Shown one piece after another: positions 2,870 through 46,851 of a stretch of DNA of 52,662 bases; the stretch's first letter is position 1, and every line of letters starts with the position of its first letter. The notes beneath the pieces were generated by a model, which was not told the DNA's origin, searched no databases, and saw only the letters and a program-made list of their open reading frames with translations. The position numbers and the translations under genes were made by a program. Source of the stretch: Perkinsus chesapeaki ATCC PRA-425. Taxonomy: Eukaryota > Protista > Perkinsozoa. The DNA is taken from assembly GCA_013115145.1 (NCBI GenBank), contig JAAPAO010000207.1, positions 1 through 52,662 on the forward strand, given 5' to 3'.

Positions 2870-4990
2870 CAGTTCACCTCTGGTGGCCTATGAACGCCGC
2901 GGCGTTCATTGCCGTAGCGGCAATGCCGTTGATGCCATCAACTACAAGAAGGCATTGCTAAGAAGCGTCAGCAGCCAGCTAAGAGGTCCTCAAGTACGCA
3001 GACTGATAACATTTCGCAGCCTGGTGAATTGCTGGCCATTCTCGAGGAGGCCACTGCGGCTCCGAGCCTGCTTCTGAAGCAGGCTTAGCATGCTCAGGTA
3101 CCCCTAAGGCATTGAAGCAGTGCGTCAATGTCCTCCGCACCGCGGTGTCACCATTGATAGCTATAGCACCGTTGGGTGCTTGGCCGGTATCTCTCCTATA
3201 GTTGACGACTTTGCCATCGAGGAGGCCACTGATGTTAAGATAGATGCTCGCTCTGAGGTTGAGGAGAGTACGTCTGAAGTCTCTGTCTACGATACTGAGC
3301 TCTACCCTCAAGGCCCTCGCGACCTGCTTGTCTCGGTTGAGAAAGGCCCGGCGGTGCTCAAGGACGGTACTACCACTTCTGCCAGCCGGATGACTATGCA
3401 GCTACCCTTCATCTTCCCTCAAAAGGGTCCTCCTTTTCGCCTCGAGCAGCTTATTCGGCGAGACTTCGCCCTTCTCAGCAGGCTACAGCAATCAGGCCAT
3501 CTTAAGCTCTATGATAGCTTGATTGATTCTTTCAAGAAGGCTGGTTATATTCGCCCGGTAGCGGTGTCCGATGTCAAGGCTGATGACAGCGGGTGTACCG
3601 CGATTCATCCATTATTGTTTCGTCCATGGCATGTTCCGTCCAGGATTGTTTCGCCCAGATCGCAGTTTATCCAGGAGCGTTTCGTCCTCTGTGATTGTGC
3701 TCGTTTCGTACACATTTGTTTCGTCCATGTAGGGTTTCGTCCACGATTGTTTCGTTCATGCTTGCTTCATGCAAAGATGTGCTGACAATGCGCATTTCGT
3801 ACATGACTTTCTCGTCCAATAGACATTCCTCCACGCTTGTTACATTCGCAGAACATGCTGGGTCTATTAGAAACCTGGTATGAGATAATAGATAGGATAA
3901 GTAATCTTGAAATAACCCGAATGTTAATTATCCGGTTGAGTGGAATATGCGGAGCGAAGCGCATGATGTTTGGTAGATTTTGATACGTCGCGACGTTTTC
4001 AAACATAACCCGACGAAGAAAGTTGAACTTGAAGGTGCGCGTTAGTCCAGTTGGTTAAACGGGACTACAGGTGCCGTCACGGAATCACATACGTCAAAAA
4101 TTGGCGTGGACGAAACGAGCATGTACGAATCGAAATGTCCATGTACGAAGCGCATATGGATGGAACAGGCTGATTTAGAGCGAAAATGGAAGAAACGGAT
4201 TAATCCAGCCGATGGTCCAACTCGTGCTCGTCTTATCCCCGACCTCCTTGAAGAACGGCGACAATATTTTGAAGCCCTGCTACTGCAGCCCTTTCGCCCG
4301 CTATGCTTCTGGAATACTGCTTATATCTCCACTAGCTTCGCCGAGGCCCCGGAGGATGTAGATACAACTTATGTTGTCCGCTGTAGACAACAACCCGCTT
4401 CCTGGTCCTGATGCTCCCGAACTTCGGGACCCGAAGACTTTTCAAATGATCTTATTGATAAGATCAGGTCCTGCCAAGTGGACGACCCTTTCTGCAAGAA
4501 CATTGTCAAGGCCTTCGAAGGGAACTGTCCGGAGTTCTCTGCTAGCTACCTCAGTAACCTCTACTTGAGGTCCTCAAGAAGTTCTTCCATGTTGGTGACG
4601 ATGGTATCATCTTGCATACTATTGAAGCCCCTGAAGAACGGCCTATATTTGTTCCCTCGGCCCTTGCTGAGGAGGTAGCTGAAGCTGTTCGCGTCTGTGC
4701 TAAGCATCCCGGTCGTGATAGAACCCGTCAGCTTGTTGGTCGCTATTCCTGGTGCAAAGGTCTCTACAAGCTTGTCAACCGTATCGTTTGCTCTTGAGAT
4801 ACGTGCCATCGCGGCAAGTCCTCCAGGTTGCATCGACACTTTCTTGGCCAAGCACGTGTCCGCTCTTCTCTTTCTGGTGAGCTACTTGGTGTTGACTTGC
4901 TCGTTTATGATTCAACTGCTGCTGACAATATTAGCCCTTGGAGTGCCGAAGTTGATACTGCCTTGCAAGCTTCTGGTCTCGGCTCTGAGA
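2870..4990 (+). mobile_element. Degenerate LTR retrotransposon pol remnant (BEL/Pao-like pre-RT segment plus integrase H2C2 zinc-binding segment)
   Basis: 3120-3590 reads RMTMQLPF...LLSRLQQSGHLKLYDSLIDSFKKAGYIRPV, resembling the segment before RT in BEL/Pao pol. ~4450-4815 reads IRSCQVDDPFC...HPGRDRTRQLVGRYSWCKGLYKLVNRIVCS*DTC, an integrase zinc-binding motif with a frameshift and a stop where a Cys is expected. No RT core seen. Confidence 0.7.
3600..4205. mobile_element. Non-autonomous, MITE/foldback-like insertion with inverted subterminal repeats
   Basis: About 10 copies of a GTTTCGTCCA-like motif on the left (3615-3805). Inverted TGGACGAAAC-like copies on the right (4105-4200). Interrupts the retrotransposon coding sequence. 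Exact ends not resolved. Confidence 0.5.
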
Positions 4991-5420: not shown

Positions 5421-5699
5421 AACCGTAGATAGAGGGTTGGCGTTAGAGTTGGCCATCCCGGTAGAAAATTCGTTAGTTGAACGCAAGGGATCCAAGTTGT
5501 GGATAAAAATAGCAGTATATGTACTCTAACCAATACACCAAAACAACTGACACTCAACGCAACCATTTCCATTATTAACAACAACGATTGGTAAATAACA
5601 AGCGACATGCAACACTACGGCATCGGCAAAGTGCTCATCTTCGAGCCTCCTCCTACTATAGAGGGATGGAGGCCCGACTCGGCTCCTGGTGGGGCCGCT

Positions 5700-8600
5700 A
5701 GGGATCTTGTCCAGGGACCGCTCGCCATTAAATTCGCCGGCGATGCGTTGGCACCTCCTAAAGAAGATTAATAATGCAATACTAGGTCTTCGTGACGAAG
5801 CGGCGAAGCTCGTTCAGCTGTTATTTTGCTCGTTGTTAGTTCGTCATCACACGCGTAGTGCTTTGGAGGTGCGAGCGAATGATCAAATCGCGCGGAAACG
5901 ATTTAGAGAAGTCGTGGGTTCGAATCTCACAGGCCGCATTTTCCGTCAAATAATGTTTTTGGTAGCTTTCAAAAAATTACTAATTTTCTTGGCATCCCCA
6001 GAGGGAGGGGAGTCTTTTCGTCTACAGGTCATCAGCCAGTTCGCTCTGGTTAACGAGAAATAATTCGTGCGCACGCACGCACGGCGAAATGATCCATCTC
6101 CAGATAATAAGCTCCGCTCGCTTCGCTTGCTCCGCAATTAATCTTACCCAACAGATATCATCTTTTACATATCTTTTTCACATTTAAGTTTTCTCTTTTA
6201 TTCCGAAGAAAGACAAATTTTCCCAACTTTTTCGAAATTTTATAAAATTTTCCGAAAAGAAAGCAATTTTCCTCGTTTTCCCCGCAAGACTCACCCATGC
6301 CTTGAATGCGGATTTCCTGATGCCGCAATTGCCTCTCCTGCTCGCTCAAAAGCAGCTGAGCTTCTCGGAGCTCCCCTGAGATGCAAGCGTCAACCTAAGA
6401 TACCTCGAAAATGCTCTTTACGTTGCAACTGCGTATTGTCCTGAGCAAGGTGATTCGTCGATACAACCAGCTCTTGAAGCTTAGAGTGATACCTGATGCA
6501 CACACAATTTCGCGGCGCGTGACTGTCCACAGCTTTCCAGGTGTTCCTACAAACACAGTGCGAGCGAGAGACGTAATAGCGAACGTAATACGATGTTCCT
6601 CTTTTGATAAATAAAGCGCGAATAACTCCAAATGATACCATCTCCCTGGCCGGTGCACGAGAATCCCGGGAGATTTCTCCAAAAAGGCGACAGTGCTTCA
6701 CCCGACAAGCGACTTGAAGATGACATACCTATCGCTCAAGATTCTCACTTGCAATCCTACTTTGATTGGAACAAAACATCCTATACGAACTAATGTAGAT
6801 TTCATCAAATCAGCCGATCGGTAGTCACACGGACGCTGGAGGCTTTCTCGCCTGCCACTCATGATATCTAGTGCGGGTCTATCCGAGAGCGCTTATGAAC
6901 CATATACGCTCTTTGGCGACGAAATAATTTTTGTCAATTTTCGAGGGATTACACAACAGTTGGAGTCGACCAAGTACTCCACAAATGAGCCTTCGGCTCC
7001 AGAAACCTACTGAAGCACGAAAATTATCACCATTTGACCCAGGGGCTTCGGCCACCTTCGAGGCTCGGGGCGTTAGAAGTTTTCTCCACCCGGAGATAAG
7101 CCGGAAATTACTCCATAAGATATGCTACTTGATTATGAAAGATGTAAAATATACGAAACTAGACTTAAGAAAATAAACATGCAAATTACTAAATTTAACA
7201 TCAAATACATTCCTTCCTATAACATCTAGTTCTCCTCTATCAGTCCCCGTTTATCACCATTCTAGCTCCAGCTGCAAATGTCTACAATCTTGCTGAGTGA
7301 GTAGCAACTCCTGATAGACCTCTTGAGAGGCTCCCCCTCCACCAACCGGGGAGCCTGCCATGCCCATACCACCACCAAACATGCCTCCGCCGCACTGCTG
7401 GAGCATCATATCCTGAAAAAAAGACGAAACACTTCAATCACAAATTTCAAGACGTTTCCAAATAGAATGAATTTTTTCATATCGATACACACATACAGCT
7501 CCATCCAGCCTGACAAGATCCTTGTGACCAAAAGTTCGAGCGCTTTCCCCACGACGAGGTATAGTAAGGAATTTGACAGGAAATTTTTGTCAGTCGTGCG
7601 GAGAAGAAGCATTAAGTACGTCGCGCATGCGCAGCGCAAGAGCGAAGTTTCTTCAAATACACACATTTTGAAGACCTTCATTTTTAACACCGTCATTTTC
7701 GGTACCTTTTTCGAGACTCGTATTTCTAATTCGGCGTAGTTTTGAGATCGTCGTTTCTGGGCGCAGCGGTTATTTCTGATTCTGATCAGCTCATTTTTCG
7801 CCCGAAACGCTTGAAATACTCGTCGAACGAGCGAGCAGCTTCCGAAGGTTTGCTCGAATGATGACTATAGGGCGAATTTCGCAAGAGAATGATAGGAAAT
7901 GCTCGAAAATGGTTCGTGAAAGTCAGGTAAACTTTACACGAAATTTGACATGTGCTGTAAAGAAAAAAATAGCACCCAAAATAACAGAGCCCAGATAGCT
8001 CAGTTGGGAGAGCGCCAGACTGAAGATCTGGAGGTCCTCAGTTCGATCCTGGGTCTGGGCATTTTCATTAAATACTCTTCAAACCTCATATCTGCCTTTA
8101 CTACGTGATACTCTACAACGAATTCACGTCTCTCGAGACGCGTCTCGCCACCACTGAACCGCTACGTCGCACTCGACTCGAGTATCCTCTCATTTCTCCC
8201 CAATTTAGAATATCAGATTTTCCTACAACCTATAGCCCAACGCTGGAGGATGCACTTCTCGGGATTCTCATAATCTCCTCCAAAACTGAAACCGGTTATT
8301 TGTTTTTCTATTAACAATCATCCCTGTCATTTATCACTCTATAACTCCTGTCAAATAATTTTCTTGCTCACCTTCTGAACTATATCCGACTTCAACTTCG
8401 CAATCTCCCTCGTGAGTCCTCCGATATCAATATCGCCGCTCTGCAATAGACACCATAAATTCATCGACGAGAGCTATATGTGCTCAGTCTCCAGAGACGA
8501 GAAGTATTCAGGGTTTCACAAGAAGTATCGGAGAATCTTATTATCAATAATATCGATCCAATTAATAATATATTGATAATAATTCATTATCCATCGTCCA

Positions 8601-10760
8601 GTCTTTAGTGGATCGGTCTATCTGGTTTAATGGATCCTGCGACACCTCAAGAAGAGGTTTTGATGTCGTCGGCCCTTGAAAATAATGCAAGTGCTGGATT
8701 AATAGGAAGAAGGTTAGTTGTGGGATGAGCAGTATGATCCATATTAGGTTTTTTGTATGACAGCAATATTCTTAGTATTATGCGGAATACGTCCCCGTCG
8801 AAAAACATTCATGAATGTTAGTTCAGAAATAAATTCGTAAAATACATTTACATTTCATACCAACTTTTCTTCAAAAATACTCGCTGATGCGGCTTTTGCT
8901 AATAATGAATACGAACATGCAAAATTTGATAGAAAATATGTTTCTAATAAAACATCTCTTTTGCGAACATCCAATATTCCTCCTCACCTGGAACCTCGCC
9001 ATCTGTGTGTTTAACTCGGTTATAGTTTGATTCGCTGCACGGATCTCCGCGTCTTTCGCCATCAGTTGCTGCTGCTGCATCATCACATCCATCCCACCGA
9101 CACCTAAACATCACGCTCGTTACCGACTTGAGAAAAAATTCTACCGCGTCGTCGTAGCTACTATACTGGATTTTACCCCAAGTAAAAAAGTCATAATAAT
9201 TTTATAACGGGTAGTATGGATAGTGCAAAGGCTGGCGTATCTCCGAGCTAGACACTTTTAGGGCAGAGGTGTGACGGGGATCAGCAGAGCTAGAAATCTG
9301 CACGCATGCGCTCATGGACAGGAAACAACCAATGGGCATAACTTGTACTACAACAATTTCAGTTATTCATTTAATGTGTCTGGTAAGAAGAAGTTGATAA
9401 TAGTCTGATATATTTCACTAAATATGAAATTCTGGCACGAGCCACTTGAAGGATGCGATGTAAACAGATCGACGGTGTAACACTTGACATTGGTTCATAC
9501 ATCACCATTGCTCCTATCAGTGCACGAGCTGGATTCGTTCGTCGCCGAGAAAAGAAAAAATTCCCCACGGCAGTAAAATGGATATTCCGTGAGTATTGCG
9601 CTGCGCATCAGAAGACCCCAGGTTCGATCCCCGCACCCTGCACCTACCCATCGGATTTGAAGCCAACATGCTCATCCTGGATACCGTCGAAAACGCATCA
9701 GCCGAAGCGCCGGGTGCAGCAGCTCCCGCGCCAAGCGTCATCTGAAAACCCTAATTTCCGACCACCAAAAACCCGGGTTTTCTGTTGCCCACTTTTTGCT
9801 GTTGCACAAACATCATCAACGTCGTATACTGACTCGCCAACTGATCCACAACTTGTTGAATGGACGCCATCTCATCAGCGAGCTCAACGAAATTCGGGGG
9901 ACCGCCTGCGTTGAGAAAATGCAAGATTGCAAGATTTCCGCTTACCCTCGCCCTCTGGGATCTCTCCTGATGCTATCCCAACTGCCTGTATGACATCCTC
10001 TAGGATAGCCGCCATCGATTCACCCTGCTCGGCAGTCAGGCCCATCCGCTGCCCTGAGGGAAAATCTATGCGGTGCGGTCGTTGTGGAATCTTCCGGATG
10101 AGCAAAATCTTCAGGGTGCGCACTTGAGTATATCTTGTCGAGTGTCGGATAGGAAATATCATAGAACAGTCAAAATATATTTTATGAAAAGTAATATTAT
10201 TAATTATATTAATATTAGTTATTCAATAATTACCGCCAGTTGTTGATTAATACAATTTAAAACAAACAAGAAAAAATATTTGACGCATCGAAGAGGAGGG
10301 ATCACTTCTTGATTCTAACAGTAACATTTTCCGCCGGTTTTCCCATTATATTGTGAGGAGGTAGCAAAATGCCATAGTCCATTCCCCATCTCAAAAAAAT
10401 GACACTCCACATGGCAAAATTTTCCCGGAAAATTTTCCCCAAAATTTTCCTCACCTGTAGCCGAGTCCGTCATGACATTCGCCCGCTGAGCAATCCTATT
10501 GCAGATTCTCAACGACGAGTTCGCAACATCAACAACACTGCACGCACTCGTCATCTCGCTCGCAAGACTCTGTAGCTGCTCACAAACCGGCGGCACCAAA
10601 TTAGCTGACAATGAAAAGCGCGCGCCCGAGTGATCGATTTGCTATTAAAGCCGAAGAACGTACCGGAGCCTTCCTTGGGACCGCCGATGGCCGCAGCGAG
10701 GGAATCAAGAATGCACTCAATTGGCTCGGCGATTGACAGCAGCGCTGTCGGGTAGACCTG
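5700..10760 (-). CDS. One or more multi-exon coiled-coil hypothetical genes, boundaries unresolved
   Basis: GT-AG bounded exons give coiled-coil-like peptides: RYHSKLQELVVSTNHLAQDNTQLQR|ELREAQLLLSEQERQLRHQEIRIQGM (6290-6510), GDIDIGGLTREIAKLKSDIVQK (~8375-8440), MDVMMQQQQLMAKDAEIRAANQTITELNTQMARFQ (~8990-9092), VYPTALLSIAEP...GS|ANLVPPVCEQLQSLASEMTS (10455-10760). Confidence 0.45.
7989..8061 (+). tRNA. tRNA-Phe: tRNA-Phe (GAA)
   Basis: Complete 73-nt cloverleaf GCCCAGA-TA-GCTC AGTTGGGA GAGC-G-CCAGA CTGAAGA TCTGG-AGGTC-CTCAG TTCGATC CTGGG-TCTGGGC-A, followed by TTTT (Pol III terminator). Confidence 0.97.
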
Positions 10761-11647
10761 GAAAATAAGGTAGATAATTATAAAATATTAAAAGGAAATA
10801 TTATACTACCTATACAAAGGTAATATATATATTAACTTTATAGTAAAAAAATAAAATAAAAGTAAATCTGATGGTGAATTGTAAATCTAAGAGAATTCGA
10901 CAAGTGAATGAAGAACTAAGAAAGAAGGAATGAAGAATTTCGTCCGGTAGGTAAAGTGGTGTGAAAACATAGGTCTCTGTGATGAACAAAAAATCGGAAT
11001 TTTTACCATCAAGTTGAATTCTTCGTGCCACGGACCTTGGCATGAAACGGTTGATCGATTTAGAAAATATTACTGAGTAAGCTTGAAAAAAATAAAAATA
11101 AAATTAAAACTGACAGACCGGGGGCGTATTTTCAAGCAATTAAAACGGAAGAGTCATCTACAATCTCCGATGTTACTCGGTAGCGAAGAATCTTCGAAGG
11201 AGGAGAAGAAAAATAATGGTGATGCGGAGGAGAGAGGGGATAAACTAAATTATTATACACGAAAAATCCTGAATTCCTCATGAAAACTTTCCAAAATTTC
11301 CAAAAAAACTAAATTTTCAAGAAAGTTTCCTGAATTTTATGAAAATTCTCCAAATTTCCTTTACCATAAGAAAACATCAATGCGTTCCTTCTGGGCATAC
11401 TAACATCATCTGATCATCATTCGCCTTCACCATTTCAATACCAAATTAGTAAGACCCGAGAATTCGGTCTCGGTTTTACTTAAATAGGTCCGGAAACGGT
11501 GTAGTTCGAATGCTTCTCACCCTCTTAGAAAAAATTTTAAAAAATCTTCGTAAATTTTCCAAAAATCTCCCAGACTTTGCGAGAATTTCGTAAATTTTCT
11601 TAAAATTCCCAAAATTCTCCTCTTCCTCTAATTCGGATCCTTCTCAC

Positions 11648-14600
11648 CTTCCCCTTGGTCTTCAATTCAGTTTCCAACATACTAGTCTCATCGCTGGTCC
11701 CTTTCATTATTTTAATACGATATTCCAATTCTTTAACTTGATATTCGAACTCGGCAACAGCGTCAGCACCAGAGCCTCCGCCACCGTGACCTAGCAAAAC
11801 CCACATACATCAATCCCGCACAGGTTCGATCCCGGCGGCGACCTACTTCCGGCGAGACCGTTCATTAAGGTTATGTCGAGCATGCTGGACTTGAATTGGG
11901 ACAAGTCTTCTTCAACAGATTCTTTCATCAAGAAGGTCTTTACTCCCCTGAAGGAAAAATTTCATTTTTAGGAAAAATCCCCGAAAGCTTTACGGGAAAA
12001 ATTCCAGGAAGCCGCATTTCTTCGGAACATCGACCAGCAAAGGAATGTATGAGAGCGAATCAGAATGTCAAAATCGATCACGTGATCGATCGACCAAACC
12101 TGCCTACCCTTGTCCTGATTCGTTCGCTCCCAACGTTCCTCGTTCTTCAAACTCATACAGACCGGATCCTTCATATCTATCAATTCGTAATCGAAAGGTC
12201 CCCGGTTCGATCCCCGCGGCCTACTCTTTATCAATTTCCACTTTAGTTGTTTCAGTGCAGTGAACATGGTTACCGACACCCGTGATGGCCATGTGTTTGG
12301 CGAGGTCGACGGTTTCGCCGAAGAACGAGTAACAGGGCATCGTACGACCACCACCAACAATAAGACCACCGTAAGAGAGCCTGAAATTGACATTGCTAAA
12401 TTCTGCGAGCTTATCGATTCTTCCTGGAGCAATCCTCGTTAAGGAATTTCGCGTTCGCTCTCTTATCCCAAAAATCCCAGATTTTTCCCTTTTTCACGGA
12501 AATTTTCCGAGATTTTCTATTTTTTCACAAGAAGGCCAGATTTTTCTCTTTTTCACGGAAATTTTCCGAAATTTTCTTTTTTTCCACAAGAATGCCAGGA
12601 TTTTCCCTTCCCTCCTCTGAAAGGAAAAGAGTCCGATTCTGCCCAATCCTTACCCAGTTGCGACGCCAATCAAAAATTCAACACTCTTGCCGACAACGTT
12701 AATATTCGACTGAGCCAGCCCCGAGAGAACGTCCTTCGCATAGGAGAGAATCTTCTCAACATGGTCCTCTTGTCGATCATGTCCACATACAACCAGTACA
12801 CCAGCACCGTCCATATCGACCTGAAATGATAATCGATCACGTGATCGATTTGATTTCCCACCTTAAAGATGTCATGCGCCTTAAGAAATAAATCGAACGC
12901 AGTTGTCATTTTATTCAGCAGGACGCACAATTGCGAAATCGGCACGATTTGCTGAATGATATCAAACTCCTTCATCATCCCGTACAAGAATGTCACGCTT
13001 TCGAACTTGTTGGCAACCAAACTGCCCTCGTCTGAAAGAAAAATACTTACAAATTAATTACATTAAAATGCCCTCGCCGCGGATCGAACCCGCGACCTCC
13101 TACTTTGCCTGATGCTCGCTAGAACGTTTTGCGGAAGAGTTCTTTGCATCATCTCGTTGGTCACTTTCTTCTCAAAATTTATATCTTCCATCAACTTCCT
13201 CACCACCAACGCGTGAATCTAAACGCATCCGTCAGGAATCGAACCCACGCCCTCCCGATTGAAAGGCAAACACTATCCCCACCTTAGTTGCCAGTTCTTC
13301 CTTCTCCGCAGGTCGCTGGATAATGTCGTTCGCTAATCGCTTAACCGCCTCTAATCGACCAGCCGGCGTCAGCTCATGTGTTATCATAATCTGAAATGCA
13401 CCCTCCCGGGATCGAACCAGGGACTTTTCGCTTACCACAGGGAGCGACGGGTGAAACTCTCGTCGGATTATATCGAGGACTTCATATCCTGTCATCCCTC
13501 CAACCGACTGTGTTGTCATGCTCGCCGATATCATCAGCATGTCCGGCAACGCGTGGCTCTCCAAGTTCTCGATGCAGTCATAACCGTCCAGACTCCTTTT
13601 GTACTCGAAGCCCGCCTCCTCTGACATGGATGCCTCAATTCGGAGTTGCCTCTTCAATACCAAATCCAACGCATTCGAACTTATTTCTTTCACCGAATTA
13701 ATACTTCCAATCGCTAACCACCATCAGGGCGCTCAAGTACAGCGCCGAAGCGGTCATCGACGGAAACGGTCGATCGATTTCTAACACCCGGCCAGCTTAA
13801 TAGGCACCCGCTTCACGGAAGAAGTTTAGTTCCATGAGAACGATTATAAAATATATCCGTATCACTTCGCTTCCATGCAAGTACGAGCCCGTGCTCTCTT
13901 AGATATGCTGCAACGAACAATCTCGGGAAGAGTCAATCCGATTGACCAGCCATCGCCAGAAAAATGCCGACGGGTTCTCGGCGAGGCCAACCAGGCCAAT
14001 CCCGAAATGAAACTTACTGTCCAGAATACTCTCCAGCGCCTCGTGGTTCTTAACCTCGTCATCACAGTAAAGCACTCTAATCGTGCCAGATTCGGCCAGC
14101 CTCCTCAAAGCTTCCTCCTGGATGGTAACTTCACCTTCATCATCATCAGCATCGCCCTCACTAGCAACTGAGTCAACAACATGTCCGTCTTTCATGCGAG
14201 CGACCCAGGTTCAATCCCCGGTCTCACCATCTGTTTTTCCTTCATCGTCCCCTTCTGCTGCCGCTGTCAGTAATGCCTTGCTTGCTGTGGAGTGCCGCTT
14301 GGACATGCGCGAATCTGAGCAATCCCGTATCGATCACGTGATCGATTTAGACCTCGCAACATCTTCACCCAAAAAAACTCTATCGAGAACGCCAATATTT
14401 TCGAAATTTTCTTGCGACTGTCTCCATGGCCCCGCAGGCTCAACGGCACCACGCGGAATTACGTGGCGCGCGGTTTACACAACAAATGCACTAGATTTAT
14501 CTTCATCGTAGTTTTGGCAACATCGATGTCAAACTGACGGGAGCGTAGTTAGCAACAGCAACTCGTTTTCCGGCAGCCACACAAAATTGCCAAAGGAAAA

Positions 14601-17600
14601 TGCTCAGTTCGGATTTTTCACAATCCAACCCACCCGAAAGCATCTAGCGCATCGATCACAGCATATGCCACTCACTCCGGACATTTGCATTTTCGCAAAC
14701 TTACTCTCCATCTGCGCCGTCTGGAATGCCGAACCAAAGCTCGCATGCTTGTTGCCCGCATCCTGGGCCCCTCCAGCCTCCTTCACTTCGTCTGCGATAC
14801 GTTGAGGAAGTCGAACGTAGAACTGCGAACCTGAAGATAGAATCTCCGAAGGGGATCCGACCACGTAAGGTGAGAAAATATTTAAGGGAAAATCAGAATT
14901 ATTTACAGAAAAAATCAGAATTATTTACAGAAAAAGTCAGAATTATTTACGGAAAAAGTCAGAATTATTTACGGAAAAAGTCAGAATTATTTACGGAAAA
15001 AGTCAGAATTATTTACGGAAAAAATTTCAGACTTTTTTGCAAGAGTAGCAAAGTGTGAGATTTCTGAGGGTCTGACACAAAATCTTCACAGTGCATAAAA
15101 GTATCTTTCGAAAATCTCCACAGTGCACAAAAGTATCTTTCGAAAATCTTCACAGTGCACAAAGGTATCTTTCGGAAATCTTCACAGTGCGCAAAGGTAT
15201 CTTTCGGAAATCCTCACAATGCGCAAAAGTATCCTACCTTTTCCAAGCTCGGATTCGACCCATATCTTCCCGCCATGCAGCTCAGTTACTTTCGTACAGA
15301 TAGCCAATCCCAAACCCTAAAGACAAAAAATCTCCCGGGTGCGCAAAGATATTTTTCCTCGATTGTAAGCTTCAAAATATCGTCTTTATACAAGGCAAGC
15401 GAATCCTACTAACCCTTCCCTAGTAGGAAATCTTTGTAAGGGAATCCCCACCAAAACTGCTTCACTGACTTCCCATCATTCGACTCCGATGTAAAAAGCG
15501 CGCGCCCGATTGATCGATTTCTTACCAAACCGCCGCCTTTCCCTTCCTCCTCCTGACCAAAAGCTTCGAAAATTTTCTTCAAGTTTTCCTTTTTGATTCC
15601 TTGTCCAGAATCCGACACGCAAAGAAGAATCGTGCCAGCCTCGGCTTCGAACTTGGAGCCAATTCGAACGAATCCTGATTAATTTAAAAATGCCGCCGCT
15701 GGGATTCGAACCTGCGACCTACCGGATGGCGTGAATTTGAGGGCGTTGTTGACCAGATTAAATACGACTTGAGAGAGCCGCTCTTTATCACCTTCGATGG
15801 TCTGAGTGGACCGCACTGTGAAGAATCTTTGGGAGTATCCTAGCTTACCGGCAGGTCCGAATCACATTCGATTTGAAGCTCGACTGATTCTTTCTTGATC
15901 TTCTTCCCGTTCTTGTCAACCGCCATGTTCATCAACTCCCAGACTTCCTCGCAGATTTCATTGCAATTAACGGTCTTCGTCAAATTCAATTGCATCTTGC
16001 CATCTCGGAGGGCGCTCACATCCATAATCATATTCACCAGTCCGACTAGTCTAACCTGTAGAGCGCTCGAGTTCACTGCGGGACACCCAGGTTCGAATCT
16101 TACTCCGCAGGAATTAATCATTTTTAGATGTTTTGTCCTCCCTTTGTTTTGCTCGGTCTTGATCAACGCGTCCGACAAACCGATGATTCCATTAAGAGGA
16201 GTACCTTAACAAATAGAAATATGTGTATCTTTTCCCCTCCAAAATGCACGCTTCAACCTACGAAGCTCATGAGCCACTCCGGCTAAGAAGTCCTGCTGCT
16301 GCCTTTCCGCCATCTCTTGTTTCGTGAGATCTTTAATATGCGCCATTAAATAATAGTCCTGCGTGCCCGATTGCTCCGAGAGGTGATTAATGACGATTTC
16401 AACCTGTTAAACAACAGCGTATCTTTGCACGCGCGCACAAGTAACGCACGCGTAAGAATTTCGGCACGAAGCTCAGCCAGGTACGCACGCTCCTATCCGA
16501 ACGTATTGAACATCCGATAAAGCGTTATCTTCGTTTTTAAACTAAATGATAGTTGAGCGTTCTTGATGCCTCATACGGCGCAACATTTTCATGAAGAATG
16601 GCGGAGAGTATATCATCTTTAACCAGAATCATTGTGGCGTTAGTTGATCTATCTCCTACACCATTTCAAGAAATCAACGCGTGTCTCGTCGTTTACTTCT
16701 ACACTTGTCTTTTACTGACTTCATCAAGTCCACTAGGGCCGTGGTGGAGCTATGGAGTCGCCTGGCCGCCGTACTCCGGCCGCGAGCGGGAGAGAGAAAG
16801 GAAATTTCACAATGTACCGATTTGTTTTCAGCTTCCAATAATCAGGTCACGAAATCGTGAAGCACTGTACGAGCTGTGTAACTCATCCTAAGTTGTCCCT
16901 ATCGCCCCCTCTTCCGCAAAGTCATGCTAAATAGTCAGAGATAGACTCCCTATGTCACCCTCCGCGTGTGCTCTCAACTCTATCTGTTTGCTCATACCAC
17001 TTAGCCGGCAATTCGCGTTTAATAAGAAATACACTTCCTATGTCGTAGGACGTAACGATCTTGTCAGTCTTACCGATATGACGCTGCCGTCTTTCTTTTT
17101 AAGTTGCCCTTTGATTGGCTTCACAATCTTGCACACCGTAAAGGAGTTCTTCCTCCTCATCCCCTAAAGCTCAGAATTTCGTAAAACGGCAAAGTCAAGC
17201 TCCGACCTGAGATCGATTTGTATCTGTTTTCGATACGAATGAGTCAACGTGGCTCTGATGGTTTCCGGCGAACTCCTCTGGCATGAGCACCTTGCAAACG
17301 GCAGATTTAGTCAGACAACAGGAGGCTTCTTACCGATACGTTTTGGCCGATCAGTTCGGTCGCGATGTGGCCTGTTAAAATCTCTAAAGCTGCATTAGTG
17401 TGGATCTACAAAGACAATACAGCAAACCTCTACCGGTTAATTTAGCCCAAAGGTATTGCGCTCGACTAAAGAGCGAACAACCCATGGTTCGATTCTCAGA
17501 GCCTCGACCTTCATTTGAGAAATGTCCCATTTTCATCAAATCAATCCAGAATCGATTCCACCATCTTATTTCCCGTTTAGAAAGGAAGTGTGAGACTCTA

Positions 17601-17891
17601 CAAGTCTCAAACGACACGATAGTCTCCACTTGCCAAGTCCGTCCTCCCCATTCTGCCGTGCCGCACAAGTACTCCGCGAGTAGTTGGTCACCGCATCTTA
17701 TCGGCGCGTCGTTCACCCTTTAATTTCCGTCCCCCACACCTTACAATGTTCCCTTTTTTATCGGCCAGCACCATCATGTCAGTAAGATTCTCCATAAGCC
17801 CGCGGACACCATCCCAGAAGGGTCCGCTTGCCCCAGACATGGTTGGACAAATCTGTCGCGGTTTGGTGGAAACTTGCGCACTTCCAGACAA
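11648..17891 (-). CDS. Multi-exon hybrid histidine kinase: PAS/PAC - HisKA - HATPase - receiver - degenerate class III nucleotide cyclase - coiled tail (both ends uncertain)
   Basis: Hand-spliced exons give [18 protein letters not shown]...ELIGQNVS|VLMPEEF...KKDGSVIS|VEIVI (PAS), [10 protein letters not shown]|TPLNGIIG (H box), [30 protein letters not shown]...[14 protein letters not shown]|SQFYVRLP (HATPase), RVLYCDD...[10 protein letters not shown]...PDMLMIS...LPV|IMIT (receiver), KFESVTFLY...DIFK|[13 protein letters not shown]...[20 protein letters not shown] (cyclase fold). Confidence 0.85.
11791..11846 (-). other. 56-nt GT-AG intron containing an antisense tRNA 3' fragment
   Basis: Intron begins gtaggtcgccgccgggatcgaacctgtg. 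Plus strand reads caggttcgatcccggcggcgacc. Splicing restores the frame (LAGS|HGGGG). Confidence 0.75.
12177..12224 (-). other. 48-nt GT-AG intron equal to an antisense tRNA(Thr-CGT-like) 3' half
   Basis: Plus strand ttcgtaatcgaaaggtccccggttcgatccccgcgg. Splicing gives VEIDKE|[13 protein letters not shown], and the unspliced frame has a stop. Confidence 0.8.
12821..12861 (-). other. 41-nt intron built around the 20-bp perfect palindrome AATCGATCACGTGATCGATT
   Basis: Palindrome at 12831-12850. Splicing gives DIFK|VDMDG in the cyclase domain. The same 18-bp core occurs at 12073-12090 and 14329-14346. Confidence 0.8.
13032..13103 (-). other. 72-nt GT-AG intron with a sense tRNA 3' half followed by TTTT
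   Basis: gtaggaggtcgcgggttcgatccgcggcgagggcatttt... Splicing gives SIRQN|EGSLVANKF. Confidence 0.8.
13219..13282 (-). other. 64-nt GT-AG intron resembling a sense tRNA-Glu from D-loop to acceptor strand
   Basis: gtggggatagtgtttgcctttcaatcgggagggcgtgggttcgattcctgacggatgcgtttag. Splicing gives ELATK|IHALVVRKL. Confidence 0.8.
13391..13435 (-). other. 45-nt GT-AG intron equal to a sense tRNA 3' half starting in the anticodon loop
   Basis: gtaagcgaaaagtc-cctgg-ttcgatc-ccggg-agggtgc-a-tttcag. T-arm fully paired. Splicing gives the receiver motif PSLPV|IMIT. Confidence 0.85.
14168..14227 (-). other. 60-nt GT-AG intron containing an antisense tRNA-Glu-like 3' half
   Basis: Plus strand ctttcatgcgagcgacccaggttcaatccccggtctcacca. 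The unspliced frame has a stop, and splicing gives GKTD|VASEGD. Confidence 0.8.
14888..15017. repeat. Intronic 22-bp minisatellite, about 6 copies
   Basis: Unit gaaaaagtcagaattatttacg. Confidence 0.9.
15079..15234. repeat. Intronic 32-bp minisatellite, about 5 copies
   Basis: Unit aaaatcttcacagtgcacaaaagtatctttcg. The last copy runs into the splice donor (atcctac). Confidence 0.9.
15675..15722 (-). other. 48-nt GT-AG intron equal to a sense tRNA 3' half plus T-tract
   Basis: gtaggtcgcaggttcgaatcccagcggcggcatttttaaattaatcag. Splicing gives ALKFTPSG|FVRIG, and the unspliced frame has a stop. Confidence 0.85.
16056..16103 (-). other. 48-nt GT-AG intron equal to an antisense tRNA fragment (D-loop 3' side to T-loop)
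   Basis: Plus strand gtagagcgctcgagttcactgcgggacacccaggttcgaatct. Splicing gives the HisKA helix MINSCG|[12 protein letters not shown]. Confidence 0.85.
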
Positions 17892-26482: not shown

Positions 26483-27739
26483 TTATTTTACATCTTCATT
26501 TTTCATTTGCAGATCATCATGCTTTTCTATCAACACTCTTCGACCGCCCTCAGAGGCACTGCCGTTCTCGTTCGCAATGGCGCCGACCTGGACTCCTTTA
26601 ATCGCTGTCACCACCGCCTCCGGATTTTTTTCGATTTTTGCATCAGAATCGAAACTTGTTGCCAGCCCCTCGTTCTTGACAATGTAAGGAATGGATTCTA
26701 CGTTATCCAACGCCAGATGGTAAATCCTGGACGAATACGCCCAAAGCTCGCTCAGCTCCGCGTCCCTCCCGATAAAGAGGACCGCCGTCAAGATATGAAC
26801 CAACATTACACCAGCTGAAACTTTGATTCTTCGCTTGGATCTAGAGCTCTTTACCAGCAGATGCAGGTCCTCACACACACCGTGCAAAGATGCCATTGCA
26901 TTACAGAACGGCCCCATAAGCTTTCTAAGCAACAGGAGGGTGATGGGCCCCAAAGAGTGACGATCGTATACGGACTTGAAGAGGAGGAAGAGACCAAGGG
27001 TAATAGCATTTGTTATTATTGTTGAGAGAGAGCTAGCTGGCACCGACGCGAAGAATCCTGTTAAAAACACCGGTGCCGGGAATCGAACCAGGGCGCCTGC
27101 AGCTGCACATACCATGCCAAGAAGCAACAACACCGGTGGTGGGGCGGCAACGTCGACGAACGGATCGATGCTCGTAACTGTTCGCGGTCTGGATGGGTCG
27201 ACCACGCCAACCAGGATGGACCAGAGAAAACAGATGGCGAGAAGTAGAAGGCATGATTTCACATTGCAACCCTTCTTCTCATAAAACGGACGAAAAATGT
27301 ACCATCGATCCTCGGCACTTGACGGTTTCAAAAACATAATCATGATCACCCCGATAGAATATATGCCACCAAGATAGACCGGCGCCCATCGGCCATCAGC
27401 GACCAAACCATCTAGTAGTGTGACGTACTGAGACAGGCAGGCTACAACAGCTAAGCAGGCGGCGCCTCGGACGGGAAGTTCCGTGACCGGGGACGCTGCA
27501 GCTCTGGCGATGAGCGTTGGGGTGGAATCGTCATCGGATAGATCAACCGGGGAAGTAGAAGCCCAAAGGAAGACGCTGGAAAGATTCAACAGGACGAGCA
27601 CCTGCGACAACCAAGTCGCTTGCCACGCGCTCACCATGAGACTCACCCAGAACCACGCCGTTGGCGAACTGGCTGCACTCGGACCGATGAAACAGGCAGT
27701 GACTGCCTCAGTGCACATAGCATGGAGCGCTGCTGGCAA
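26483..27739 (-). CDS. Multi-pass membrane hypothetical protein, 5' exons probably upstream
   Basis: 418-codon open frame with several hydrophobic stretches and no ATG at its start. May contain an intron at 27058-27117. Confidence 0.55.
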   Translation of the reverse strand: MPAALHAMCTEAVTACFIGPSAASSPTAWFWVSLMVSAWQATWLSQVLVLLNLSSVFLWASTSPVDLSDDDSTPTLIARAAASPVTELPVRGAACLAVVACLSQYVTLLDGLVADGRWAPVYLGGIYSIGVIMIMFLKPSSAEDRWYIFRPFYEKKGCNVKSCLLLLAICFLWSILVGVVDPSRPRTVTSIDPFVDVAAPPPVLLLLGMVCAAAGALVRFPAPVFLTGFFASVPASSLSTIITNAITLGLFLLFKSVYDRHSLGPITLLLLRKLMGPFCNAMASLHGVCEDLHLLVKSSRSKRRIKVSAGVMLVHILTAVLFIGRDAELSELWAYSSRIYHLALDNVESIPYIVKNEGLATSFDSDAKIEKNPEAVVTAIKGVQVGAIANENGSASEGGRRVLIEKHDDLQMKNEDVK

Positions 27740-41881: not shown

Positions 41882-42829
41882 TTACTTGAAGAAACAAGCG
41901 CATCTCGTCGTCGTCCCTGTCGCGTGGCCACCAACACATTTACCGAATACGCGGCTGTTGGGGTACCTCTCGCAGACACTTCCCTCATACAAAGAAGCGC
42001 AGAACATATCACCTCCACCACATTCGACATGAGGTTTAGTTGGCTCAGCAGTAGTAGGTACTGGAGTCGTAGTGTTGTAAGGACTCGGAGTGGTTGTTAC
42101 CGGCTCGGTCGGGCAGGGGGTTGTTGTAGGGCAAGGCGGTTGAGTGGGACAAGGTGTAGTCGTGGGACACGGTGGGTAAGTGCTTGAAGTGGTAGTCGTA
42201 GTTGTATTGGTAGTTGCCGTTGTAGTCGTAGGACAAGGCGGTTCAGTAGTTGTGGTGGTTTTAGGCTGAGGTGGGCAAGGTGTAGTTGTAGGGCACGGTG
42301 GGTAAGTGCTTGAAGTGGTAGTCGTGGTAGTTGTGGTAGTTGTGGTAGTCGTGGTAGTCGTGGTAGTTGTGGTAGTCGTGGTAGTCGTGGTAGTCGTGGT
42401 AGTTGTGGTAGTCGTCGTTTTCGTTGTTGTGGTAGTTTTAGGCTGAGTTGGACAAGGTGTAGTTGTGGGGCACGGCGGGTTAGTGCTCGAAGGGGTAGTC
42501 GTAGTTGTGGTCGTGGTTGCCTTTGTAGTAGTTGTAGTCGTAGGGCAAGGTGGTTGAGTTGTAGTCGTCGTGGTCTGGGGCTCGCAACTCGGAGTGGTTG
42601 TCGTCGGCCCGGCGCAATCACATCGGATGACTCTGGTATCCTTAGAATCCAGAAGTTTGCAAACTCGTCCCGCGGGGTCAAACTGGTAGCCCTTGCAGTA
42701 GGAACCGTAACCTATTTTCTCCACACAGAGCGCATCGCCGCAGAGGGGCTCGTTGGGAATGACACCAGCGGTAACAAAAGTGTTGGACACAGCAACAAAA
42801 GCGGTAACAGCGACGGCCTTATAGAGCAT
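41882..42829 (-). CDS. Secreted Thr/Pro-rich mucin-like protein with terminal 6-Cys domains, copy A (315 aa)
   Basis: Signal peptide MLYKAVAVTAFVAV, repeats TTTTSSTYPPCPTTTPCP, Cys-rich N- and C-termini. Confidence 0.9.
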   Translation of the reverse strand: MLYKAVAVTAFVAVSNTFVTAGVIPNEPLCGDALCVEKIGYGSYCKGYQFDPAGRVCKLLDSKDTRVIRCDCAGPTTTTPSCEPQTTTTTTQPPCPTTTTTTKATTTTTTTTPSSTNPPCPTTTPCPTQPKTTTTTKTTTTTTTTTTTTTTTTTTTTTTTTTTTTTTTTTTTSSTYPPCPTTTPCPPQPKTTTTTEPPCPTTTTATTNTTTTTTSSTYPPCPTTTPCPTQPPCPTTTPCPTEPVTTTPSPYNTTTPVPTTAEPTKPHVECGGGDMFCASLYEGSVCERYPNSRVFGKCVGGHATGTTTRCACFFK

Positions 42830-43969
42830 TGGGACGACTCTACTAGTAGAAGAGATAAAACGAGACGCTTGGGAGGGGGGGGGTGAGGGCGAATGAGACG
42901 CGACGCGAACTTGGGAGTTCTGCAAGGAGACGTTATGCAAGGCGACATACGAACATATCAAAGTATAAGTGTTTTCCCACTCTGTGTGGGATAATTTGGT
43001 ATCTTAGCTCTACGCATACATATAGCTCCTTGAGAATGTGTTGTTCGAGGCCAGAAAAGTGTTACTTGGGCGGTGCTGTGATGGGAGGCGTTTCAGGGAA
43101 TATGTCCCTTCGGTATTTTTCTGGTTGCCGCTCCTACAGGCTGACGCTTATCGGTGACTGTTTTCTATACAAACTTCGATATCGTCCTGCTGCACCTCTT
43201 TGAAGAGGCAAGTCGCATGTTAACTTTCTTTCATCACTGCTCAGGTCATTCGCCCCTCCGATACTCTCAGAAAGGTCTTCACAGTTCTGCTGATAATAAT
43301 TTCGACAGCTCTAGTCGGTCTAGCGACCAAGTAAGAATCCTTTCTCGATGCTAGTTACCGTATCTTTCCAGTTTGGTACTAGTACCACCAACGAGGACCA
43401 CTGCCCTGCTGGCATCGACAAGCTCCCTGAAGGGCAGCACGAGAAAGACCATCAACAGGCTTTTCGGCAGCGTGAGAAAATAAGTAAAAAACATGTGCAG
43501 CGATTGTTGATCAACAGAAGATGTGTTTTGTGTTTTATTGGGAGTTCTGGCGGGAACGAAAAGATATTGGGCAAGCAAACACGAGCAAGTCCCAAAGCAG
43601 AACTTTCGGCAAGATTCGGCGCAATTCTGGTCCAGTACTCCTGGAGGAGTCCTTTTACTGCTAATGGGTTGTGTCCGTAATGACAATAATACTTCTCGAC
43701 TTGTGGTCCCTCTGGAACGTCGAAGGCAACCGTATGATCACTTCAATGGATGCTAGGGCAAATCAGCCTTGGCACGACACGAGCGTTTGGCATGCCGCGA
43801 GGGCTAATGCTAATGCTGTGGTCTTTTGACAAACTGAAACTCAATACTAATGATATGAAGGATGATTGAGCTACCTCTGGCTGTTAAAGATTACAGTCTT
43901 GAAGAAGCTGCGGTAAAAACTTCTCTCAAAACTACTAGTAGATCGTTAAGAGTTGAGAAGGTGAAAATC

Positions 43970-45289
43970 TTAATTCCAGAAACAAGCGCATCTCGTTGTC
44001 TTCCCTGTCGCGTGGCCACCAACACATTTACCGAATACGTGGCTGTTGGGGTACCTCTCGCAGACACTTCCCTCATACAAAGAAGCGCAGAACATATCAC
44101 CTCCACCACATTCGACATGAGGTTTAGTTGGCTCAGCAGTAGTAGGTACTGGAGTCGTAGTGTTGTAAGGACTCGCAGTGGTTGTTACCGGCTCGGTCGG
44201 GCAGGGGGTAGTTGTAGGGCACGGCGGTTGAGTGGGACAAGGTGTAGTCGTAGGGCACGGTGGGTAAGTGCTTGAAGTGGTAGTCGTGGTAGTCGTAGTT
44301 GTGGTAGTCGTAGTTGTCGTAGCTGTGGTAGTTGTCGTTTTCGTAGTTGTGGTGGTTTTAGGCTGAGGTGGGCAAGGTGTAGTTGTAGGGCACGGTGGGT
44401 AAGTGCTTGAAGTGGTAGTTGTCGTAGTTGTGGTAGTTGTCGTTTTCGTAGTTGTGGTGGTTTTAGGCTGAGGTGGGCAAGGTGTAGTTGTAGGGCACGG
44501 TGGGTAAGTGCTTGAAGTGGTAGTTGTGGTAGTCGTAGTTGTGGTAGTTGTCGTAGTTGTGGTAGTTGTCGTTTTCGTAGTTGTGGTGGTTTTTGGCTGA
44601 GGTGGGCAAGGTGTAGTTGTAGGGCACGGTGGGTAAGTGCTTGAAGTGGTAGTTGTGGTAGTCGTACTTGTGGTAGTTTTGGTAGTCGTAGTTGTCGTAG
44701 TTGTCGTAGTTGTGGTAGTTGTCGTTTTCGTAGTTGTGGTGGTTTTAGGCTGAGTTGGACAAGGTGTAGTTGTGGGGCACGGCGGGTTTGTGCTTGAAGG
44801 GGTAGTCGTAGTTGTGGTCGTGGTTGCCTTTTTAGTTGTAGTCGTAGGGCAAGGTGGTTGAGTTGTCGTAGTAGTCTTCGGCATTGTCGGGCACGGCGTT
44901 GTCGTAGGGCGAGGAGGTTGAGTCGTCGTAGTAGTCTTCGGCATTGTCGGGCACGGCGTTGTCGTAGGGCAAGGTGGTTGAGTTGTAGTCGTAGTGGTCT
45001 GGGGCTCGCAACTCGGAGTTGTAGTCGTAGCGGTCTGGGGCTCGCAACTCGGAGTGGTTGTCGTCGGCCCGGCGCAATCACATCGAATGACTCTGGTATC
45101 CTTAGGATCCAGAAGTTTGCAAACTCGTCCCGCGGGGTCAGGCTGATAGGACTTGCAGTAGGAACCGTAACCTATTTTCTCCACACAGAGCGCATCGCCG
45201 CAGAGGGGCTCGCTGGCAACAACACCAGCGGTAACAAAAGTGTTGCACACAGCAACGAAAGCGGTAATAGCGACGGCCTTATAGAGCAT
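43970..45289 (-). CDS. Secreted Thr/Pro-rich mucin-like protein, copy B (439 aa)
   Basis: Paralogue of copy A with more internal repeat units. Confidence 0.9.
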   Translation of the reverse strand: MLYKAVAITAFVAVCNTFVTAGVVASEPLCGDALCVEKIGYGSYCKSYQPDPAGRVCKLLDPKDTRVIRCDCAGPTTTTPSCEPQTATTTTPSCEPQTTTTTTQPPCPTTTPCPTMPKTTTTTQPPRPTTTPCPTMPKTTTTTQPPCPTTTTKKATTTTTTTTPSSTNPPCPTTTPCPTQPKTTTTTKTTTTTTTTTTTTTTTKTTTSTTTTTTTSSTYPPCPTTTPCPPQPKTTTTTKTTTTTTTTTTTTTTTTTTTSSTYPPCPTTTPCPPQPKTTTTTKTTTTTTTTTTTSSTYPPCPTTTPCPPQPKTTTTTKTTTTTATTTTTTTTTTTTTTTSSTYPPCPTTTPCPTQPPCPTTTPCPTEPVTTTASPYNTTTPVPTTAEPTKPHVECGGGDMFCASLYEGSVCERYPNSHVFGKCVGGHATGKTTRCACFWN

Positions 45290-46851
45290 TGGGACGACTC
45301 TACTAGTAGAAGAGATAAAACAAGCCGCCTGGGGGGTGAGGGCGACTGAGACGCGACGCGAACTTGGGGGTGACGCGGGCGAGCTCCGCCATCATCCCAA
45401 TTGCGTTGAGGGGAAACACGCCGAAGCGATATAGGTAATGACCGTATGCTCACCTTCTGAGAGTTCGTACCGCTTATAATTGAAAACCCTTAGAGACCAA
45501 GACGAGTTTCGGTGACTTTTACCGCTTATCACAGCATTCGCGATCGATTAATCGCGCGGCCCCCTTAGAATTCTAGCGCAATTTAGCGCCACGCCGCTGT
45601 GCGCTATAAGCGCAGCCGTAAGAACCGCCTCAAGCAGCTAGTACAGTGCTTACAATGAACAATAGCCTCGATTATACAACAAGCTCAGTCTTCGAACCTG
45701 GAATTTTCGATACGGGGTTCTGGTAACGGGGATCTCCCTGAACTCCAAACCTAGTTTGATGGAGCCAAACTGCTCCGTTAGCGGCAGCGGACTGTGAGGC
45801 TTGCGGAATGAAGGTTAGGGCATCAAAAAGTCTTGCTGACTCCGAGGAGTGGAGCCTTATCTAGTGTATCAGTGCTCCAAAACTCAATAGTTAGATTAAT
45901 GTCGATGACCTTCTTGTGGCGTCGCACCTCAAGAACCACTGCGCCGTGTAGTTGCACAGGGGCTCTCGGTTTGAGTGAATCCTGCTAGGTTGAGGAGTGG
46001 TATCTCGCGACACTAATTATATTCCTTTGTGGTAAAGCTGATTGCCATATGGTGGCAATCACAGTATAGGTATTAATTTAATACTGTTAAACCCTCTCGG
46101 GAGCCGCGGGAGTTCCTCGGAAACCTAACACTGGCCAAAGTAAGCACTACTGGGGGGCCCCCACTGGGGGTTGTTGTTGCGAAGCCTTGCTTTATCGGAC
46201 TGGTGGCATCGATCCGGCGCTCTTGGCAACTTAACGGACAACCTTAACTACACGAGGATCGTAGTCAGGAATTCATCTGGCATCGCGGAATGTGTTACTC
46301 TGGCATCGAGAATGGCTTATAGGGCGGAGTACAATTGATAGAGAGTACTTCTTTAGAGCAAAACGACACACCAAATATAATCCTTCTGGTAACATCTGAT
46401 GGACTAGTCGACAAGTAAGTTGAACCAATCGTGGAGAGTCTGATATACCAGTTCTATGTTACGCTAGAAATGTCATTTAGGATAGTATTCGCCTGCTCAA
46501 TCGATTTAGACAGAGTGCAATGGCACATCGCAGTGCCCTCATTCAGTCTCGCCATCGGAGAGGCGTGCTTGCAGCCTGCGAAACTAGTCTCGTGCGATAT
46601 CCCAACCTGGGCGCCTCCAAGGTGAGCCTCACCCTCTGCAAGGTGCGAATCGCAACCTCACCCGGTGAGGTATATGGCTTCGTTGGGTTGTTCAGAACTT
46701 GCTCTTCGTAATTATTGAACGCTGCTTGTATCCCACGCGCAGGTGATCCGAATTATCGCTGCGTAACGATTTCATTTCTACTAAAACAAAACAGATAGAG
46801 GTAAAAGCACGTATGAACATTGAGCATGAGTCATTGCAGTTAAAAGATATT

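Follow-up and report, generated by a model that had tools for sequence, protein, structure and literature searches.

How do pieces of tRNA genes come to stand as introns in a protein-coding gene, and do they serve any purpose there? The question is raised by 52,662 nt of DNA from Perkinsus chesapeaki ATCC PRA-425, a parasite of clams and oysters (contig JAAPAO010000207.1; this whole stretch is hereafter the window), in which an earlier note had pointed out eight short introns of a kinase gene that look like tRNA 3' halves. The observation itself is confirmed here, and the interpretation placed on it is supported in part. The intron bodies derive from genes of several different tRNAs, the introns predate the split between P. 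chesapeaki and P. olseni, and one short segment, the B-box of RNA polymerase III (Pol III) promoters, is under purifying selection. The best explanation of the locus as a whole, which we hold with a probability of about 50%, is that degenerate pieces of tRNA genes stand as introns, that they are old and constrained at the B-box, and that this box may be read by TFIIIC. The origin of introns is a long-standing question, the known sources are mostly transposon families, and the source suggested here is a varied set of tRNA-gene fragments.

The host gene and its introns

The host gene (P0150, FOL47_003452; 5618-17840, minus strand) encodes a PAS-HisKA-HATPase-REC-cyclase protein of 1289 aa, which maps exactly onto the DNA by splicing across 32 GT-AG introns. 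All eight intervals claimed as introns have GT..AG borders on the minus strand and coincide, base for base, with introns 6, 8, 12, 14, 15, 16, 19 and 21 of the GenBank model. Their removal had been said to restore conserved domains, and the spliced product indeed gives Pfam matches to PAS, HisKA, HATPase_c, Response_reg and Guanylate_cyc. It has an open frame and is collinear with three homologues from an exon search (P0003, P0004 and P0006), each of which is one uninterrupted open reading frame (ORF) on a multi-gene metagenome contig. Relative to these homologues no indels occur at the claimed junctions, except for 14168-14227, which lies in a variable linker. The intervals display the borders, the restored frame and conserved protein, and the position and phase kept in relatives that characterize U2-type GT-AG introns. 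Two small RNA runs, the only ones listed for the species, gave nothing on the gene or on 44500-50000. Given the identical GenBank coordinates, the collinear spliced product and the same positions and phases in P. olseni, we judge the eight intervals to be genuine spliceosomal introns.

One further intron, placed at about 15816-15865 (GTGATTCGGACC...), proved wrong; the homologues and the GenBank model locate the intron at 15802-15848, and by the same two sources the T-loop-like GATTCGGACC near it is exon. Of the C-terminal coiled-coil segment of the kinase, a second, degenerate copy interrupted by an in-frame stop follows just downstream (window 5651-5857 vs 6239-6373).

tRNA-like content of the introns

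The T-loop motif GGTTCGANYCC, allowing at most one mismatch, was found in all eight introns, which bears out the claim of tRNA 3'-half content with a T-loop in each. In the window as a whole this motif occurs 18 times against 5.5 expected, a total reached in none of 100 shuffles. The exact form GGTTCRANNCC occurs seven times in the introns of the gene (8.4 kb), never in its exons (3.9 kb) and four times in the remaining 40 kb. Four copies are in sense orientation (13032-13103, 13219-13282, 13391-13435 and 15675-15722) and the other four are antisense, the same assignment as was made before.

The likeness extends well beyond the T-loop. In the four sense copies and in a module of intron 32, a variable loop (ARGTC or AGGGC), a mostly paired T-stem and seven acceptor bases follow each other at tRNA spacing; the discriminator is usually A, and a T-run begins exactly 8 nt past the T-stem. 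The single tRNA-Phe gene of the window has the same T-run spacing and layout. The composite pattern of T-loop plus T-run was observed nine times compared with 0.44 expected and a maximum of four across 300 simulations, and A[AG]GTC stands exactly at variable-loop positions 44-48 in 6 of 15 modules. The antisense copies have the T-loop in all cases and the variable loop in most. The A-box/D-arm and the 5' acceptor strand are absent, apart from faint traces resembling a D-arm that 13219-13282 and 16056-16103 retain. No information came from a loose scan for a 9-mer with one mismatch allowed (284 matches observed, 309 expected).

The modules were also compared with each other, drawing on ~180 kb of Perkinsus DNA. 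Outside the B-box the mean identity among 15 modules is 0.34, and no target-site duplications (TSDs) accompany them; the view that the copies differ from one another and do not form a single amplifying family therefore holds. Heptamers resembling anticodon loops suggest the isotypes Glu(TTC) for 13219-13282 and Thr(NGT) for 12177-12224 and 13391-13435, labels for which these heptamers are the whole basis; the real tRNA genes in the DNA covered are those for Phe, Arg and Leu. Altogether, these data show that the bodies of the introns derive from tRNA genes, and from several different source tRNAs.

Age of the tRNA-like introns

Orthologues of the kinase were available from two haplotypes of P. 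olseni (P0001 and P0136, on loci L007 and L013), and both proteins were mapped exactly onto the DNA; a Logan contig (L012) represents a third Perkinsus lineage. The P. olseni introns have the same codon positions and phases in both haplotypes, and homologous tRNA-like introns are present at all eight claimed positions as well as at intron 27. The third lineage has homologous tRNA-like introns at introns 6 and 8. The tRNA-Phe gene, too, lies in the orthologous P. olseni intron (L013 16594-16666) with the same sequence. Since homologous tRNA-like introns occupy the same positions in these relatives, they are not recent gains, a possibility that the earlier note had wished to see checked, and they are shown to predate the P. 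chesapeaki/P. olseni split and the deepest split sampled. The outer parts of the modules have decayed differently in each lineage. P. olseni intron 14, the counterpart of 13219-13282, has a perfect anticodon stem and has lost the T-loop, and the reverse is seen in P. chesapeaki. No orthologue of the kinase was found in P. marinus.

Three minor observations concern the P. olseni locus. A T-rich stretch, which is partly alignable, adjoins the intronic tRNA-Phe gene. P0136 (1718 aa; L013 9855-20412) fuses the kinase with downstream AAA/RFC4, SERF and zf-met2 segments and is probably a mis-merged annotation. Its intron 33, in the RFC4 part, also carries an antisense tRNA-like module.

Conservation between species

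The kinase proteins of P. chesapeaki and P. olseni are 81% identical, and four-fold degenerate sites are 35.7% identical against 26.3% expected from composition (n=426), which is near saturation. In syntenic regions outside the gene, exons alone align. Orthologous introns were compared by local alignment, with z calculated against 300 shuffles. Nine of the ten pairs of module-bearing introns are conserved (z = 5.6-20.5) as compared with 3 of the 15 other pairs, 12 of which have z < 1 (hypergeometric test, p ~ 9e-4). As the introns had been picked from the P. chesapeaki sequence only, identity with P. olseni was not built into the comparison.

Conservation is distributed unevenly along the modules. 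Identity was binned by position in the tRNA after removal of the splice-site bases; it is 0.38 at positions up to 31, 0.60 in the anticodon loop and 0.61 in the 3' anticodon stem. It rises to 0.78 in the variable loop (44-48), 0.81 at positions 49-51 and 0.92 in the B-box (52-62; n=96), and falls to 0.58 at positions 63-65 and 0.43 in the acceptor strand; the T-run reaches 1.0. Sense and antisense copies are conserved equally. In introns 19 and 21 the T-stems are imperfect, with 2-3 of 5 positions paired, and these imperfect stems are themselves conserved, which argues for a reading of the sequence and against both selection for a hairpin and repair from working tRNA genes. The profile shows that the B-box and its 5' flank are under purifying selection in both orientations, and that the acceptor arm and the rest are close to neutral drift. 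The idea that intronic Pol III elements are selected for, offered earlier as one of several possibilities, is strongly supported by a B-box at 92% identity next to 36% at four-fold sites and 43% in the acceptor arm. The tRNA-gene pieces in these introns are probably still in use.

The module-bearing introns, all on the minus strand, differ in arrangement. Intron 6 (16056-16103; 48 nt, in HisKA; z 7.9) holds an antisense module with the 5' splice site GTAAGA inside the T-loop/T-stem; the introns at this position in P. olseni and L012 are homologous to it, that of L012 having kept a longer T-arm. Intron 8 (15675-15722; 48 nt, in HATPase_c; z 10.8) runs in sense from GT and an AGGTC variable loop through T-arm, acceptor and A73 to TTTTT. 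In intron 12 (14168-14227; 60 nt, in the linker; z 12.9) the module is antisense, with T-arm, variable loop and an anticodon-arm-like part. Intron 14 (13391-13435; 45 nt, in REC; z 10.1) is a sense copy with 5/5 pairs in the T-stem and TTT at +8, and its donor GTAA falls in the anticodon-loop-like heptamer. The sense module of intron 15 (13219-13282; 64 nt, at the end of REC; z 5.6) extends from a D-loop-like GG to the T-run and includes the Glu-like loop CTTTCAA. Intron 16 (13032-13103; 72 nt, before the cyclase; z 12.2) combines, in sense, AGGTC, a T-arm, GCGAGGGCA and TTTT, followed by an AT-rich tail. The highest z (20.5) belongs to intron 19 (12177-12224; 48 nt, in the cyclase), an antisense copy with a Thr-like TTCGTAA loop, AGGTC and the T-loop. 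Intron 21 (11791-11846; 56 nt, after the cyclase) is antisense, its acceptor end abutting the donor GTAGGT, and gives z 14.7 against P. olseni intron 20.

Modules in this gene number more than eight, with further ones in introns 1, 27 and 32 and the tRNA-Phe gene in intron 29. The first 47 nt of intron 27 (9601-9647 of 9104-9647, minus strand; z 8.9) form an antisense module orthologous to the entire 52-nt intron 26 of P. olseni, intron 27 itself being 544 nt long in P. chesapeaki. The long intron 1 (17406-17744) has an antisense T-loop module at 17465-17510 (minus strand). Within intron 32 (5758-6294), the segment 5893-5945 (plus strand, antisense to the gene) resembles a tRNA 3' end with AAGTC, a T-stem paired at 5/5 positions, AGGCCGCA and TTTT. 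The tRNA-Phe(GAA) gene (7989-8061, plus strand) is intact, lies antisense in intron 29 (7413-8371) and is recognized by both ARAGORN and Rfam (67 bits). Intron 5 (16205-16261, minus strand; 57 nt) begins with GTAGGTTGAAGCGTGCATTTT and may retain an acceptor and T-run remnant without a T-loop, an uncertain case; it has no conservation in P. olseni.

Function of the conserved core

The shape of this profile suggests a reader of DNA. The conserved core may be a binding site for TFIIIC, and the gene would then carry an intragenic array resembling the extra TFIIIC (ETC) sites of other eukaryotes, a proposal to which we give slightly less than an even chance. The B-box array would be parked in introns, where coding is undisturbed. 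The sense copies extend from an anticodon/variable region through T-arm, acceptor strand and discriminator to a Pol III terminator T-run, which now serves also as polypyrimidine tract ahead of the AG. Where a copy is antisense, its tRNA 3' end abuts or overlaps the GT donor.

Several observations weigh against this reading. The case for TFIIIC binding comes wholly from the shape of the conservation and its independence of orientation, and the evidence of constraint covers one gene in three lineages. Three conserved introns among the 15 other pairs have no tRNA likeness. Two P. olseni introns have a damaged B-box (GGTTCTACCCC and GGATCGATCC), and conservation of the intron 1 module with P. olseni is not detectable (z -0.5). 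Between P. olseni and L012 the T-stem of intron 8 has undergone paired changes (49:65 from G-C to C-G, 50:64 from T-A to C-G), and that of intron 14 is kept in all copies, so an RNA hairpin would also fit. The Rfam tRNA model (cmscan of the entire window and of segments of 4.5 kb and 416 nt) matched no intron at E<=10, the only match to the introns being an 11-nt tmRNA/T-loop one. ARAGORN, applied to the window, found tRNA-Phe as the sole tRNA and called no intron module. The silence of both programs marks the introns as fragments or pseudogenes and not tRNA genes. Elsewhere in the window, the modules at 35975 and 47808 show weak conservation at most (z about 3). A look-alike of a tRNA 3' end at 27040-27095 (minus strand), with a T-loop, 4/5 stem pairs and a T-run at +8, lies in a coding exon of a membrane protein (..VRFPAPVFLT..) and is conserved as protein in P. 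olseni (L013 about 3250-3300); it is either an exonised piece or a chance match. These weak modules and the coding look-alike make the class heterogeneous. Lastly, no consistent TSDs or insertion scars were found at the eight junctions (an 8-nt repeat at 12177-12224 has no counterpart in P. olseni), so the origin of the introns cannot be read from the sequence.

Other explanations must account for the same profile. A role at the RNA level, with the T-arm hairpin or T-loop of the pre-mRNA or excised intron being read by a splicing factor or by a tRNA-modifying or processing enzyme (Pus4/TruB-type, RNase Z), or giving rise to a small RNA, would explain why T-stem pairing is kept in intron 14 and, through paired changes, in intron 8, and why the T-run and the location beside the 5' splice site are conserved. 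Sense and antisense copies, however, yield different RNAs and yet are conserved equally, conservation is far lower in the outer 3' T-stem (0.58) than in the outer 5' stem (0.81) and neutral in the acceptor arm, and introns 19 and 21 conserve stems that pair at only 2-3/5 positions; we consider this explanation rather unlikely. Active Pol III units, in which TFIIIC, TFIIIB and Pol III would be recruited by the B-box and short intronic RNAs would end at the T-run, are quite improbable. The conserved B-box and T-run of the sense copies do stand at tRNA-gene spacing, and the kinase gene houses a working tRNA gene in a different intron, but an A-box and a 5' half are missing from most copies, the splice donor has taken the place of the terminator in antisense ones, and the acceptor strand is unconserved. 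Conservation through introns that are retained and translated was rejected, as intron lengths do not stay multiples of three from one species to the other and several introns have in-frame stops. Readings as primer-binding sites (PBS) or split tRNAs were likewise ruled out by modules that exceed PBS length and by the unconserved acceptor strand.

In another account, which moves the capture model of the earlier note back in time, diverse tRNA fragments captured long ago created the introns, have no function at present and were kept similar between species by ectopic gene conversion with the large family of tRNA genes, all of which have the B-box. P. marinus has hundreds of copies of some tRNA genes, and Dada transposons that target tRNA genes are reported from it as well (Kojima and Jurka, PMC3706591). 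The conservation peak falls on the part common to all tRNAs, and the T-arm of intron 8 in L012 resembles that of a different tRNA. An 11-nt B-box is too short for efficient conversion, though, the module-specific flanks (39-51) are also 0.6-0.8 conserved, and defective T-stems are kept unrepaired in both species, all of which makes this account unlikely. Decay of one tRNA-derived short interspersed element (SINE) or introner family is less likely still. It would accommodate the pairs that are alike outside the B-box (introns 16/8, 0.66; introns 19/14, 0.59), the AAAGGTCCCCGGTTCGATCCCCGCG common to intron 19 and P. olseni intron 26 with the same imperfect T-stem, and the presence of other intron repeat families in the kinase gene. 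Against it, the mean of 0.34 is measured at positions that are 0.6-0.8 conserved between species, hence the differences are old; there is no A-box, body, tail, terminal inverted repeat (TIR) or TSD, and sense copies end as tRNA genes do, unlike SINEs. Finally, chance T-loop resemblance of short GC-rich introns would fit with the absence of Rfam and ARAGORN calls, and is practically negligible in view of three independent tRNA features at the correct spacing, far above shuffles, in modules conserved across species.

Origin of the introns

Whether the tRNA-gene pieces made the introns is a separate matter from their present use. Copies of tRNA genes, or 5'-truncated copies that include the terminator, may have supplied splice signals and in this way created the introns, a scenario that we put at even odds and that is plausible, though unproven. 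It is favoured by modules that fill their introns, by donors inside tRNA-like sequence (at GT+AGGTC, positions 42-48, in intron 8, within the T-loop in intron 6 and at a D-loop-like GG in intron 15), by the T-run before AG and by the intronless gene of the nearest outgroup. An alternative is that tRNA genes landed in older introns that later shrank. This is kept alive by the tRNA-Phe gene in a 959-nt intron, by modules that make up only part of introns 1, 27 and 32, and by the 544 vs 52 nt of intron 27 in the two species. With regard to the earlier proposal that captured tRNA fragments created the introns, the diverse tRNA-derived content stands, the recency does not, and creation itself is something that we infer.

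A combined claim, that tRNA-gene fragments create introns by providing donor, pyrimidine tract and acceptor and are then selected as intragenic TFIIIC B-box sites, appears doubtful. If it were true, one event would give the host both an intron and a landing pad for Pol III factors, and B-box arrays would single out certain Pol II genes, this histidine kinase/cyclase among them. Irrespective of origin, an 11-nt Pol III promoter box with 92% identity in introns, across near-saturated silent divergence, is a testable footprint of function and suggests cross-talk between the Pol III machinery and a Pol II gene in an alveolate. The modules offer concrete sites for TFIIIC chromatin immunoprecipitation and for intron mutagenesis in P. 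marinus, which is transfectable. For annotators, the lesson is that a T-loop match within a Perkinsus intron should be taken neither for a tRNA gene nor for noise.

Comparison with known systems

A search of the literature recovered no account of tRNA-like introns in Perkinsus or elsewhere, and the P. olseni/P. chesapeaki genome paper did not surface in it. Among the closest known systems are ETC sites, B-boxes that TFIIIC occupies in the absence of Pol III and that have insulator or organiser roles (PMC12409998). In yeasts, worms and mammals these sites consist of the B-box only, are conserved amid diverged DNA, do not depend on orientation and are often clustered (PMC12409998). The Perkinsus profile likewise peaks on the B-box; here, too, B-boxes occur without a Pol III gene and are conserved above their surroundings. 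In contrast to ETC sites, the Perkinsus elements sit in short introns, fill most of them and keep tRNA flanks and terminators, and their occupancy by TFIIIC is putative.

The introners of Micromonas, Aureococcus, fungi and Amoebophrya are similar in that short inserts constitute whole introns, function whichever way round they lie and bring their own splice sites or co-opt existing ones (PMC7789003; PMC11282704). They differ in being near-identical copies with TIRs or TSDs, whereas the Perkinsus modules are dissimilar (0.34), tRNA-gene-like, old and constrained, without TSDs; the introners of Amoebophrya are of another kind (PMC7789003). tRNA-derived SINEs and intronic tRNA pseudogenes also place B-box-bearing, tRNA-related sequence within Pol II genes. 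However, SINEs keep the A-box together with the B-box, a body and a LINE-type (long interspersed element) or A-rich tail, while the Perkinsus element is a tRNA 3' part with N73 and T-run and is co-extensive with the intron. Intronic tRNA genes have a counterpart in the tRNA-Phe gene of intron 29, conserved in P. olseni, but the eight introns are fragments that tRNA finders refuse. In Daphnia, intron gain has reportedly been proposed to proceed by double-strand-break repair with captured DNA. Such gain would yield unrelated inserts of varied origin in both orientations, as seen here. It differs in that the Perkinsus junctions have no visible short direct repeats, the events are too old to put the model to a test, and it does not predict later constraint.

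Distribution of modules and other features of the locus

With a hidden Markov model (HMM) of the 27-nt module core, the window and the P. olseni locus gave 16 matches each. Three other Perkinsus loci (57 kb) gave 0-4 apiece, and the intronless relatives, over 43 kb, gave none. Such tRNA-like modules have a hot spot at the kinase locus. Five metagenome contigs (L002-L006), gene-dense and with neighbouring genes of eukaryote type, encode close kinase homologues as single ORFs, with 60-73% identity in the HisKA exon; an intron-poor environmental relative of Perkinsus is their probable source, and no T-loop modules were found in them.

The introns of the kinase gene hold other notable sequences. 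Intron 25 (9906-9945) has 40 nt, shows no tRNA likeness and has strong conservation with its P. olseni counterpart (ATCTTGCAATCTTGCATTT, z 13.5). The perfect palindrome ATCGATCACGTGATCGAT is found in introns 20 (12060-12090), 17 (12835-12855) and 11 (14325-14345). Introns 9 and 10, like several introns of P. olseni, contain repeats of the GGGCGCGCGCTTTTT and CTTTGCGCACTGTGAAGAT types; palindrome and repeats make up a second and a third family of intron motifs. Introns 10 (14831-15237) and 18 (12381-12653) consist largely of ~30-nt tandem repeats (e.g. GTAAATAATTCTGACTTTTTCC) and are unalignable with P. olseni.

Among the neighbouring genes of the window, one encodes an aspartyl protease, whose orthologue was sought for synteny and not found. 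A further gene of the window encodes a carrier protein in a single exon. At 41882-45289 lie two tandem paralogues for Cys-framed, threonine-rich, mucin-like proteins with long poly-T/PCPTTTP repeats, and a P. olseni relative of these genes is located at about 5930-6890 of L008.

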